This document shows, in pieces, positions 38,692-44,600 of a stretch of 64,000 nt of DNA. The DNA lies in assembly GCA_028826165.1 (NCBI GenBank), contig JAPDFW010000059.1, positions 744,001-808,000 on the forward strand, written 5' to 3'. Each line of letters starts with the position of its first letter. Within the stretch, counting starts at the first letter, position 1. The position numbers and the translations under genes were made by a program. The notes beneath the pieces are model-generated. The model was not told the origin of the DNA, searched no databases, and saw only the letters and a list, made by a program, of their open reading frames with translations. The DNA comes from Anaeramoeba ignava BMAN (taxonomy: Eukaryota > Protista > Anaeramoebae).

Positions 38692-41600
38692 ATGTCATCA
38701 AGAGGCAAACAAGAAACTGAAAAACTTAAAAAAAACATCGAAGATCAATTAAATCGATTATTGAATCAATTACAAGATTTAGAAGAATTAAAAGAAGATT
38801 TAGACCAAGATGAATATGAATCAACTAAAAATGAAACTATTGAACAAATGAAAGAGTTTCAAACTTCTTTGAAAAAAATGCTTTCAGGTAATATGACTCT
38901 TGTTGATGAATTTGGCATGGTTCAACTTGTAAGTTATTTTTCTCATTTTAATATATAATTAATATATAATAAATATAAAATTAATATAAAATTAATATAA
39001 AATTAATATAAAATTAATATAAAATTAATATATAATTAATATATAATAAATATATAATTAATATATAATTAATATAAAATTAATATATAATTAATATAAA
39101 ATAAATATAAAATTAATATATAATTAATATAAAATTAATATAAAATTAATATAAAATTAATATATAATTAATATATAATTAATATAAAATTAATATATAA
39201 TTAATATAAAATTAATATATAATTAATATATAATTAATATATAATTAATATAAAATTAATATAAAATTAATATATAATTAATATATAATTAATATAAAAT
39301 AAATATATAATTAATATATAATCAATATAAAATTAATATATAATTAATATATAATTAATATAAAATTAATATAAAATTAATATAAAATAAATATATAATT
39401 AATATAAAATTAATATAAAATAAATATAAAATTAATATATAATTAATATATAATAAATATAAAAATTAATATAAAAATTAATATAAAATTAATATATAAT
39501 TAATATAAAATAAAAAATAAAATAAAAAATAAAAAAAATAATATATAATAAATATAAAATTAATATATAATTAATATATAATAATATATAATTAATATAA
39601 AATTATATATAATTAAATAAAATTAATATAAAATTATAATTAATATAAAATTAATATATAATTAATATATAATTAATATATAATTAAATATAATTAATAT
39701 AAAATAAAATATAAAATTAATATAAAATAAATATAAAATAAATAAAATAAATAAAAAAATAAAAATAAAAATAAATATAAAATTAATATATAATTAATAT
39801 AAAATAAATATAAAAAATTATATATAATAAATATAAAATATAAAATATATAATAAATATAAAATTAATATATAATTAATATATAAATATAAAATTAATAT
39901 AAAATTAATATAAAATTAATATAAAATTAATATATAATATATATAATTAATATAAAATTAATATAAAATTAATATAAAATTAATATATAATTAATATAAA
40001 ATTAATATATAATTAATATATAATTAATATAAATAAAATTAATATAAAATTAATATAAAATTAATATATAATTAATATGAAATTAATATGAAATTAATAT
40101 AAAATTAATATAAAATTAATATATAATTAGTATAAAATTAATATATAATAAGTATAAAATTAATATATAATAAATATAAAATTAATATAAAATTAATATA
40201 AAATAAATATATAATTAATATAAAATAAATATAAAATTAATACAAAATAAATATATAATTAATATAAAATTAATATATAATTACTATCTTTAACGCCGAT
40301 AATAAAATAACACCAATAACAAAGATTTTTTTCTCTTTTTTTCCTTTATTTTTCATTTAATAATAAAAATACCCTTTCTATTTTTTCATTAAATATTATT
40401 TCTATGTTAACTCTTAAATTTATATTGATTTTTATAATTGTCAATTTTTTTATAATTCTGAAAGCATAAATTCTTTTTATATCAAAATTTGAACATCAAT
40501 AATAAAAATTAATGTTTCTATTTAGAATAAAAGGAGATATTATAATAAATCATCTATATTTAAAAATTTAATTCCTATGTTTTATGATAAATTTAATCTT
40601 ATTTCTCATTTTTATATTCAAATTAATATTAGTTTTTAAGATTTGAATTTTTCACACCAATAACAAAAATTTGAAAAAAAATAATTTTTATCATAATTGA
40701 TATTGATTGAATAAATAAAGTTGAGAAAATAATTAAATTTGAATTTTTTAATTTTGAAAAATATAAAATTGTTTTTTTAGAATTTTTTTATTTTTTCTTT
40801 TTTATTTTAAACTGATCTTTTTGGAGATCTTCAAAAAAAGAAAAGAAGGAAATCAATTGAATTTTGCTAAAAGTGGGAATTAAACTAAAAATTTCCAATA
40901 AAGATATCTCCGATAAATCATTTTAAATGTTGAAACTAGATTATTAATTTTCTCTTTTAAATCTTCTGAATTTAATTCTTTTTCTTGATATTGATCTTTT
41001 CTATTCTTGATTATGTTTCTTATAGAAATTTTCTGTTTTTGTAATTCTTCTTTATACTTTCTCATTTTTTCATTTTTCATTTTTATTTCTTCATTTTGAA
41101 AAGTAGAATAAATGATATGTCGAAAATTAGAACCATCTTGATATTTAATTTGAGATTTAATTCTTTTTAATGTCCAAGATTCAAAAATTCTTTTCTGAAT
41201 AAAAAGGGAAACAAAAACACCACAATCATCTGCATTATTTTGGAGACTTGGCTTTTTATGATAAACTTCAATTAATTTGAGAGAAAAAAATTGAGCTAAT
41301 TCTTTTGCTTTTTTTCTAATAGAAGGATAACCTGAAGAACTATTAAAATATTCCAAATTTTTCTTTTCTAAATTAATTAAGAATAAAACCCAATGAATAT
41401 CCTTAATTATTGGAAGAATGATCCATTTGATACTTTTTCCAATTTTCATTTTTTGTAAATTATCAATAATTTGATCATATTCATTACTCAAAAGTAATTT
41501 GACATCATTTCTTTTTGAATTTGTTAAAAGAATAGAACAAAAATCATCAATATCACTTTGACTCAACCAATTTTCTCTTGAAATTGGATTTAGAATTCTG

Positions 41601-44600
41601 TTTCTCCAACTATGGAGGTTTTCATATTCTTTAGATTCTTTTTCTAAATTCTTAAATTGAGATATTTGTTCCTCAACTTGATTTTGCAATAATTCTTCTG
41701 GAATTTCTTTTTCTAATTTCTTTTTCTCTTTATTTTGACTATCATTATTCTCTTCATATTCACTTTCATAATCATTTTCATTTTCATTTTCATTTTCATA
41801 TTCAGTTTCATATTCAGTTTCATATTCAGTTTCATATTCAGTTTCATTTTCAGTTTCATTTGGACTTTTATATTCACTTTCATATTCAGTTTCATTTGGA
41901 CTTTTATATTCATTTTGATTTTCATTTTCATTTTCATTTGGACTTTTATATTCATTTTGATTTTCATTTTGATTTTCAGTTTCATTTTCAGTTTCAGTTT
42001 CATTTTCAGTTTCAATTTCAATTTCATTTTCAGTTTCATTTTCAGTTTCATTTTCAGTTTCATTTTCAGTTTCATTTTCAGTTTCAGTTTCATTTTCAGT
42101 TTCAATTTCAGTTTCATTTTCAGTTTCAATTTCAGTTTCATTTTCAGTTTCAATTTCAATTTCATTTGGACTTTTATATTGATTTTGATATTCATTTTCA
42201 CTTTCATATTCAGTTTCATTTTCATTTTCAGTTTCATTTTCAGTTTCATTTTCAGTTTCATTTTCAGTTTCAATTTCAATTTCATTTTCGGTTTCATTTT
42301 CATATTCAGTTTCATTTTGATTTTTGGGATGTTTTTGATGAAAATTCTTGTGATTTTTTTTTGATTTTTTTGAGGATAATGGTTGTTTTTCTTCTTTTGA
42401 TCTTCTTTTTTTTTCATTTTGTTGGAAATTTGTTGTGGAAATAACATTTTGTGAAAAATTTTCAACATCTTTTTCATCAACATTATGAACACCATCTACA
42501 ATCACTCCTGTTTTCCTAAAACTAATTAAAATCTGTTGATTTGATAATTGATCCCAACTTTCTTCTGCACTTTCAATTACTTGTTCCCTTTTGAGAATAG
42601 AAAGTTCATTCATTTTTGGAAGAAGAGATTTCCTATAATTCATCTTAAATGGAGAAAATACACTTTTATCAAGAGGTTGAAGAAGACCAGTCATATGAGA
42701 TGGAATATAAATGATATGAATGTTATTTTTTTGGCACTCTTCCACAAATAGATTATCCTTATGTGCAGCAAATTGATCAAGAATTAAAATAGATTCTGGT
42801 AATTTTTCTTTTAAATCTTGATGTTGGTTTTGAATATGAGGAATTAATACTTCCAATAACCATTTCTTCATTATATAACGATTAGACCATCCAGAAGGAG
42901 AACGAAAAAAATAGGAATTGGGATATTTCTTTTGAAGAGCTGGAATAACCCTCTTTCCACTTTGAATTTTAATTATAAAAGTTGGTGGAAGTTTTGTTCC
43001 ATCTCCTGCAATTCCTGCAATAAGTGTCATTGTTTGTTTAGTATTATGAAGATGTATTGGATTTTCATTTCGACCTTTTTTTGTAATTGATTTAATAGGA
43101 GAAATAAATTGGAGATTTGTTTCATCTACATTAAAGATTAAAGAATGATCTATTTTGAAAGATCTTTTATCCATCTTAATTTTTCTTGTGTTATGGCATT
43201 CCTCCCAAAAAGATTCAGCTAATTGTTTTGGAGTAAAAGAAGAATTCCATCGATTTATTAATTTACTTTTACGAAAAACAAATCCATTTCTTTTCATAAA
43301 GCGATATGGCCACTGAACAGAAAGATTTTTTTCATTAGGTTTTATAAACATTTGGTTTGCAAGATTTCTGATTGCACCAGGAGAAACAATTAAATTATCA
43401 AGAATTTTTTGATTTATAATTTTAACAAACTGTTGTTCTTGTTCAATAGATAACCTTCCACATCTAATTCTATTTGCAATTTGACGTTTTTCATTTGAAG
43501 TGTTTCCTTTTGGATTTCCATGTTTAAAGGCTTGATATCTTGCATACAGTGTAGAATATTTAATGTTCATAGATTTACTAATTTGATCTATTGTTCCTCT
43601 TTGTCCTTCTTTTATTTTTTCATATATTAAATCCCAATTAACTTTACTTTTGGGTGAATCAAAAGTGTGTCGAACTCCAGATATCTTTTTGGGAATACGT
43701 CTTATAAAATTTTGCATTAATTAAGTCAAAAATTAAGTCAATTTTGCAATCGGTGTTAAAAAAAAATGATCAAAAAATTTTTGATCAAAGTAAAATATAA
43801 TAAAAATATTGATGATTCAGCATTGATTACTCATCAAAAAAAAAATAAAATGGTAAAGTAAACAAAAAAAAGCAAGTGAATTATTCATATCTAATTGAAA
43901 AAGTTGATTAACTTGCGAATTTTTTGGTAAATTTTATTATCGGCGTTAAAGATAGTAATATATAATTAATATATAATTAATATATAATTAATATATAATA
44001 AATATAAAATTAATATATAATTAATATAAAATTAATATATAATTAATATATAATTAATATATAATTAATATAAAATTAATATATAATTAATATATAATTA
44101 ATATAAAATTAATATATAATTAATATAAAATTAATATAAAATAAATATATAATAAATATAAAATAAATATATAATAAATATAAAATAAATATAAAATTAA
44201 TATATAATTAATATATAATTAATATATAATAAAATATAAAAATTAATATATAATTAATATAAAATTAATATATAATTAATATATAATTAATATATAATTA
44301 ATATATAATTAATATAAAATTAATATAAAATTATATAATAAATATATAATTAATATAAAATTAATATATAATTAATATAAAATTAATATATAATTAATAT
44401 AAAATTAATATATAATTAATATAAAATTAATATATAATAAATATATAATAAATATAAAATAAATATATAATTAATATATAATAAATATATAATTAATATA
44501 TAATAAATATATAATTAATATATAATTAATATATAATTAATATATAATTAATATATAATTAATATATAATTAATATATAATTAATATATAATTAATATAA

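Follow-up and report, generated by a model that had tools for sequence, protein, structure and literature searches.

For about 20 years Ulp1-like proteases have been known as cargo of MULE, Ginger1, Crypton and further transposons and, to our knowledge, none of them has a demonstrated function. We describe here such a protease in a 64,000-nucleotide stretch of the Anaeramoeba ignava BMAN genome (GenBank assembly GCA_028826165.1, contig JAPDFW010000059.1, positions 744,001–808,000 of the forward strand; this whole stretch is called the window below, and coordinates given without a contig or locus refer to it), where it forms the C-terminal part of the protein encoded by a pogo-type DNA transposon at 40284–43955. 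Pogo is part of the IS630-Tc1-mariner group, whose transposons count among those that lend themselves more readily to excision assays.

In Ginger1, found in Hydra and other animals (Bao, Kapitonov & Jurka 2010), a C-terminal Ulp1 domain (pfam02902) is fused to the transposase, and its authors proposed that Ulp1 plays a role in transposition or DNA repair via SUMO/ubiquitin pathways (PMC2836005). The likeness to the A. ignava element is that the protease is C-terminal and belongs to the same polypeptide as the transposase; the difference lies in the mobilising enzyme, which in Ginger1 is a Gypsy-integrase-like DDE enzyme acting with terminal inverted repeats (TIRs) of 44–270 bp (Table 1, PMC2836005), whereas the A. 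ignava enzyme is a DD35D transposase of the pogo type, whose element has 25-bp TIRs and duplicates a TA. According to work cited in the Ginger1 paper, KI-MULEs of Arabidopsis, melon, rice and maize carry Ulp1 as well (PMC2836005). Oomycete Cryptons also carry it, and shuffling of the peptidase domain between two element groups has been suggested for them (PMC3212892). MULEs and Cryptons resemble the present case in having C48/Ulp1 as a recurrent cargo, and the Crypton shuffling parallels the sharing of a protease by pogo and Harbinger elements that is described below. They differ in being mobilised by a MULE transposase or a tyrosine recombinase, and in CryptonS the protease is a separate extra protein and not part of a fusion (PMC3212892).

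Canonical pogo, Fot1 and Passer transposons (Gao et al. 2020, PMC7386202) share with our element the DDE_1 domain, TIRs and the TA target, and have a CENP-B/Tc5-type helix-turn-helix (HTH), of which our element carries a putative counterpart; the triad spacing in pogo is DD29-56D, and DD35D, as here, is that of Passer and the Fot and Fot-like families (PMC7386202). The protease sets our element apart, since the survey names no protease, peptidase or Ulp domain, and its only chimeras are the domesticated CENPB, POGK and POGZ (PMC7386202). A further comparison is offered by the ESM Atlas, where the top feature match (0.90) is a cluster of 64 members, commonest in Basidiomycota and named 'Ubiquitin-like protease family profile domain-containing protein', with DDE_1 in 69% and Peptidase_C48 in 53% of them; this is an automatic cluster compared by Pfam labels only, which do not distinguish a shared fusion from an independent origin, and no publication on it turned up in the literature covered.

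A preliminary description of the locus, made from the letters alone, had named Ulp1-like proteases as known transposon cargo, and the published record for MULE, Ginger1 and Crypton bears this out. It had also called a single-polypeptide pogo DD35D–Ulp1 fusion unusual. The fusion itself stands, but its rarity was overstated, because transposon-borne and transposase-fused Ulp1 domains are already established in those published systems and the Atlas holds a cluster with both DDE_1 and C48. Among 30 long relatives of our C48 domain that we scanned, C48 is joined to reverse transcriptase, tyrosine recombinase, DDE_Tnp_4 and PMD domains, and none of the 30 joins it to DDE_1 outside Anaeramoeba. A search with a full-length four-sequence profile returned only generic pogo transposases besides one Anaeramoeba transcriptome sequence (P0034, see below), and the same protein search with the C48 region alone returned no match; being word-limited, both searches say little on other DDE_1+C48 proteins. 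In the literature covered, which leaves aside subscription papers and Repbase reports, we found no description of a pogo-Ulp1 or Harbinger-Ulp1 fusion. The locus is of value for its clean, intact element and for evidence suggesting that one protease clade is shared by unrelated superfamilies in one genome. It also adds Anaeramoebae, deep-branching anaerobic protists, to the known hosts of transposase-Ulp1 fusions.

The element, its insertion site and its transposase

The element is 3,672 bp long and carries its gene on the minus strand. Its TIRs are identical at 25 of 25 positions. With respect to the gene, the 3' TIR is CTATCTTTAACGCCGATAATAAAAT at 40284–40308 (plus strand), and the 5' TIR at 43931–43955 (minus strand) is the reverse complement of these letters without a mismatch. 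A TA stands on either side, the left copy at 40282–40283 and the right copy at 43956–43957. The insertion split an 11-bp AT-only satellite, detected by TRF at 39900–40287 and 43956–44637, and when the element and one TA are deleted the empty site is an exact TAATATATAAT satellite unit, the phase of the array being restored. In a genome of 80.65% A+T (PMC11550330) the TA flanks are beyond chance because this unit is rebuilt exactly, as a TA duplication predicts. With up to three mismatches, the 25-mer TIR occurs three times in the 42.8-Mb BMAN assembly (the two ends here and one fragment end on contig C67), while the reversed 25-mer, taken as a control, occurs 0 times under the same limit. The satellite itself extends over at least 1 kb around the element and has the variants TAATATATAAT and TAAAATTAATA.

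Between the TIRs lies one unbroken ORF of 945 aa (40880–43717, minus strand, stop codon included), taken from the listing of open reading frames (ORFs) and present as an identical 945-aa sequence in the ESM Atlas. On its two sides are a 3' non-coding subterminal region from the stop codon to the TIR (40309–40879, minus strand), which has no ORF of at least 80 aa, and a 5' non-coding subterminal region (43718–43930, minus strand). The best database match of the protein is the hypothetical protein M0811_14259 of Anaeramoeba ignava (P0001), and the closest transposases from outside Anaeramoeba are about 27% identical.

The N-terminal half is that of a pogo transposase (all features of the protein are encoded on the minus strand). 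DDE_1 (PF03184) is strongly matched at aa 228–396 (E 2.7e-25; 89.4 bits against a Pfam cut-off of 22), within a catalytic core of aa ~190–400 (42518–43150). The DD35D triad, assigned by motif alignment and not by structure, consists of D198 (43124–43126), D314 (42776–42778) and D350 (42668–42670) in the motifs NVDETN, LILDQF and LQPLDK, and all three aspartates are invariant in four diverged pogo-C48 proteins. A putative CENP-B/Tc5-type HTH DNA-binding region precedes the core (aa 92–150, 43268–43444); the HTH_Tnp_Tc5 profile scores it at 21.4 bits, just under the cut-off of 22.2, and exceeds that cut-off in the C41 paralogue introduced below (25.2–25.3 bits). After the core comes a basic stretch, KKRRSK...KKSKK (aa 433–465, 42323–42421), which may serve as a nuclear localization signal (NLS).

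With DDE_1, DD35D, the TA duplication and the TIRs all present, the element is an intact pogo-type DNA transposon. The preliminary description had proposed exactly this, with perfect 25-bp TIRs, a TA duplication and one unbroken 945-aa frame, and everything was found where it had been placed, including the triad codons and, at 41753–42324, the acidic linker of about 190 aa that it had put at ~41750–42320.

The ends also bear on the idea that the locus is a domesticated host gene, i.e. a transposase-derived SUMO protease that retains its old ends. We regard this as extremely improbable. It would agree with the single intact copy and with the NCBI name of a paralogue, 'protein derived from transposon', but the TIRs match at all 25 positions, removal of one TA with the element leaves the host satellite exactly intact, the surroundings are a satellite array and not a gene neighbourhood, and an end fragment with the same TIR, 98.9% identical, is found on another contig.

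The fusion in the pogo family of A. ignava

The transposase and protease parts are joined by an ENETE-type acidic linker (aa 466–660), in which 149 of the 195 residues are glutamate (81), asparagine (40) or threonine (28). The corresponding DNA is an array of 48.7 copies with a 12-bp period, open in all frames on both strands. Repeats of the same GAAAAT/GAAACT type and 12-bp period, encoding ENETE-like acidic tracts, are present at more than 100 loci genome-wide with 70–82% DNA identity; they may represent a common coding microsatellite of the A. ignava genome rather than shared ancestry.

Such an array raises the question of whether the single ORF is accidental, either because a microsatellite expansion joined a transposase gene to a downstream protease gene or because the repeat is an intron: a repeat that is open in every frame and has similar DNA at so many loci is what this would require. 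The paralogues speak to it. When the transposase part and the protease part were used separately in protein searches of the genome, the same open frames were matched. These are C20, with an ORF of 735 aa (59% identity in the transposase and 41% in C48), C114, a 5'-truncated copy of the C20 family with an ORF of 677 aa (61% and 41%), and C41, with an ORF of 804 aa (44% and 35%); in all three Pfam finds DDE_1 and Peptidase_C48. The TIRs of C20 and C41 start with CTCTCTTTCTCACCGATAAC and CAGTCTTCCCAAACGATTAG, related to the CTATCTTTAACGCCGATAAT of the window element, and the flanks of both are compatible with a TA duplication.

A fourth diverged member comes from a transcriptome labelled A. ignava (EukProt EP01156). 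P0034 is a 'complete' 789-aa DDE_1+C48 ORF with 34% identity in the transposase and 32% in C48. Since the BMAN assembly offers no match above 33% identity, we rejected P0034 as one of its transcripts; either the assembly lacks the element from which it comes, or the transcriptome is that of a different strain under the name A. ignava. It shows that a pogo-C48 fusion is transcribed as a single ORF in Anaeramoeba data and has no bearing on the window copy. The same transcriptome contains P0035, a 242-aa ORF with C48 only, which is the sister of P0034 in the C48 tree presented below.

The acidic repeat is absent from the paralogues, which have short, non-repetitive, K/R-rich linkers where the window protein has its basic stretch. 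It appears to be a lineage-specific microsatellite expansion and at most a flexible spacer, because the paralogues do without it. C20/C114, C41 and P0034 all keep the order transposase–C48 in one frame across these basic linkers, none of the lineages has a stop between the domains, and the NCBI paralogue models are single-exon ORFs of matching length (728 of 735 and 763 of 804 codons). The intron and the accidental fusion are in this way largely refuted, and we consider an accidental ORF very improbable. Judging from the sequences, the transposase-C48 fusion is a family trait under selection and not an accident of the repeat linker, because diverged paralogues with short unrelated linkers share its architecture.

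The protease domain and its proposed role

The C48 domain (Ulp1/SENP fold) covers aa ~694–879 (41081–41638). Peptidase_C48 (PF02902) matches aa 756–844 with 32.2 bits against a curated Pfam cut-off of 20.7, and the paralogues score 29.7–35.4 bits. The best PDB sequence match of the C-terminal 286 aa is SENP1 (E 1e-3); the two sequences align at NWL..D, at HW and at the catalytic Asp position, where SENP1 has YYDS and our protein YFNS. An AlphaFold2 model of aa 690–945, computed from an alignment of four paralogues, has a mean predicted local distance difference test score of 82.8 and a predicted template modelling score of 0.77. Its best PDB matches by Foldseek are Ulp1, SENP1, SENP5 and SENP2 (E ~1e-6, probability 1.00), and re-alignment by VIA places SnCE1, SENP5, NEDP1, Ulp1 and SENP2 at Z 15–18 and a root-mean-square deviation of 2.2–3.1 Å over 163–171 residues, with a sequence identity to the Ulp1/SENP/NEDP1 fold matches of 15–22%. 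Feature and structure searches of the ESM Atlas with aa 690–945 returned C48 clusters only. Since Pfam, the SENP1 match, the model, Foldseek, VIA and the Atlas searches agree, the assignment of the domain as a genuine C48/Ulp1-fold module is well supported.

The preliminary description had recognised a C48 signature from its His, Asn and Cys, and these sit on the codons it had named: H775 (41393–41395), N792 (41342–41344) and C832 (41222–41224), with Q826 in the Q-x5-CG motif. W717, H775, W776, Q826, D831, C832 and G833 are among the residues invariant in an alignment of this domain with four others (three pogo lineages and one Harbinger, 27–44% identical to it), and so is a WRxRI motif ahead of the domain. 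W717 lies in NWLS, the counterpart of NWLN in SENP1, and W776 in the HW motif; by SENP/Ulp1 structures, we take them to be the two tryptophans that clamp the C-terminal Gly-Gly of a ubiquitin-like modifier (UBL). The protease core is followed by a conserved helical tail (40883–41080) of two long helices (residues 172–220 and 228–254 of the model), whose last residues are conserved and in which the pogo and Harbinger fusions all share N237, T241 and W252. In all, the domain is like Ulp1, SENP and NEDP1 (MEROPS C48, clan CE) in its fold and in having His, Cys, the oxyanion Gln and both Trp in place, and unlike them in having Asn or Ser for the catalytic Asp, an extra conserved tail and a transposase attached.

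The third position of the triad deserves attention. At the canonical Asp position (N792 in the window copy), C20, C114, P0034, P0035 and the Harbinger fusion also have Asn, and C41 has Ser; across the A. ignava transposon-associated domains read (P0035 counted), Asn is found in 9 of 10 and Ser in one. Asp is kept in a host-type Ulp1-like gene on C109 (YYYDS) and in P0038, a metagenomic Harbinger-C48 protein (FYDS). The C109 sequence (C109:127747–128016; L058:1507–1893), presumably a fragment of a host Ulp1/SENP8-like gene, has the His...Asp and Q-x5-CG motifs and is the only genomic C48 match that keeps the catalytic Asp. Because of the change from Asp to Asn or Ser, one may think of a pseudo-enzyme that only binds SUMO: a weak or dead protease would then have been retained for its binding to SUMO or another UBL, by which it would direct the transposase to, or hold it at, modified chromatin or repair foci. 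The contrast between the transposon-borne copies and the Asp of C109 and P0038 points this way, as do the modest Pfam scores (30–36 bits). Against it, Cys, His, the oxyanion Gln and both clamp tryptophans stay invariant at 27–45% identity, which fits catalysis better than mere binding, and Asn works as the third residue in pS273R of African swine fever virus (ASFV), an active clan-CE protease with the triad C232-H168-N187 (PMC9920524). We consider a pseudo-protease rather unlikely and read the Cys-His-Asn pattern as that of a probably active, atypical C48 variant, by sequence and by analogy with the viral enzyme.

The viral enzymes bring up another possibility, a protease acting in cis that releases the mature transposase or removes an inhibitory tail. 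Poxvirus I7L and ASFV pS273R are among the fold matches (pS273R at Z 14 by VIA); both, like adenain, are polyprotein processors of clan CE, and a long flexible linker would be open to cleavage. Ulp/SENP, adenain and pS273R-type enzymes require Gly-Gly at P2-P1. All fusion ORFs of the assembly, four pogo and four others, lack this dipeptide, and self-cleavage at Gly-Gly was rejected for this reason; P0034 has a single Gly-Gly, at residue 328, inside the transposase domain. The linkers are, moreover, unrelated in sequence between lineages. Self-processing, which the preliminary description had entertained as an alternative, is weakened accordingly by the lack of Gly-Gly in the fusion proteins of the assembly, and we hold it to be distinctly unlikely.

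The reading that we favour, and think fairly probable, is that of an autonomous, recently mobile pogo transposon encoding one protein built of HTH, DD35D core, NLS-like stretch, spacer, C48 domain and tail, the protease of which would be active in trans on a UBL and favour transposition. The DNA-binding domain of the transposase and the basic NLS-like stretch would carry the protease into the nucleus and onto the transposon ends, the spacer being a flexible tether without a specific sequence function. There the C48 domain, if active as supposed, would be a UBL isopeptidase or hydrolase, with SUMO the most likely modifier according to the best sequence matches and NEDD8 or ubiquitin also possible. 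By stripping UBL marks from the transposase or from host factors of chromatin silencing or DNA repair, it would favour excision and integration, much as has been proposed for Ginger1 (PMC2836005). The protease is covalently fused here to a small, simple and apparently intact pogo transposase.

Several observations weigh against this reading. The replacement of the catalytic Asp described above means that activity may be reduced or altered. SUMO-, NEDD8- and ubiquitin-specific enzymes are all among the structural neighbours at similar Z, so substrate specificity is not readable from the fold. Other pogo ORFs of the assembly, 458–599 aa long and 32–34% identical (C24, C102 and C1:1216396), have no C48 match, and since protease-less pogo lineages coexist with the fusions pogo transposition in A. 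ignava does not strictly depend on the protease. Sequencing runs containing the element number five, in two studies, and none of them is recorded as RNA. Finally, the element is scarce. A DNA search of the genome gave one full copy, that of the window, and one 1,056-bp fragment on C67, which comprises the TIR and the first 273 codons, differs by 12 mismatches (98.9% identity) and carries D198N; the remaining ~125 matches are all to the repeat linker. Derivatives of the miniature inverted-repeat transposable element (MITE) type were rejected, as the TIR is found only three times. With one intact copy, one fragment and no MITEs, current activity is therefore unproven. The family had been described beforehand as young and possibly active: perfect TIRs and the 98.9%-identical fragment uphold its youth, while the genome-wide count, low as it is, does not uphold its present activity.

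The fragment on C67 (L056; C67:15000–24999) lies between two LINE-like ORFs, one of 955 aa with an APE endonuclease and the other of 1159 aa with APE and RVT_1. The genome paper of A. ignava contains no analysis of nuclear transposons (PMC11550330).

The protease on PIF/Harbinger and other transposases

The C48 domain is not confined to pogo. Two ORFs of 851 and 795 aa on C35 and C98, 98.5% identical, have an N-terminal half of PIF/Harbinger type (DDE_Tnp_4 at 1e-25, together with HTH_Tnp_4), followed by C48. They belong to an element of about 2.9 kb in two copies of the same identity (L054:4108–6982 for C35 and L055:4180–7088 for C98), which begins with GGGCCAATTCC and ends with GGAATCTCCCC; AAT adjoins both copies on either side, and the element showed no second, Myb-like ORF. 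Fusion to a C48 protease is a general habit of several transposon superfamilies in A. ignava, with pogo and Harbinger confirmed.

In a maximum-likelihood tree with 35 outgroup domains, which were chosen by a profile from four ingroup sequences, the six A. ignava C48 domains (four pogo, P0035 and one Harbinger) form one clade with support 96/97, and the Harbinger domain nests inside it; the Harbinger branch is long and the root arbitrary. A C48 profile search of 1.84 billion representatives gave four matches below 1e-30, all from Anaeramoeba, the next one standing at 3e-10. A clade-mate of the pogo protease on a Harbinger transposase suggests that the module itself benefits transposons. It is possible, and we put it forward only tentatively, that the Cys-His-Asn Ulp1-like module is a portable accessory, exchanged between or repeatedly captured by unrelated superfamilies (pogo and PIF/Harbinger) as a tethered deSUMOylase or other UBL protease that defeats a SUMO-dependent host pathway of transposon silencing or DNA-damage handling. 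If this is true, A. ignava would be a natural system for testing the function of transposon-borne Ulp1 proteases.

A more distant C48-like domain (H[FY]...[FL]NS...Q-x5-CG) ends further transposase ORFs of 700–1534 aa; these domains reach the Pfam cut-off marginally or miss it. They include multi-copy Harbinger ORFs on C126, C134 and C137 (L025, L026, L029 and L030), which have an acidic linker of ENENEYQSE repeats, a 945-aa probable Harbinger ORF on C117 (L064) and a 1534-aa ORF on C68 (L067), presumed to encode a transposase. At the DNA level, the Harbinger family with the ENENEYQSE linker cross-matches the linker of the window element at ~80% identity.

PF11976 (Rad60-SLD/ubiquitin fold) has 127 genomic matches, for example on C75:49796–61594, C65, C147, C59 and C56; ubiquitin arrays dominate among them, many matches stand in long tandem arrays, and no single SUMO gene stands out. 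The UBL-domain repertoire of A. ignava looks unusually large, which could matter for transposon-borne UBL proteases.

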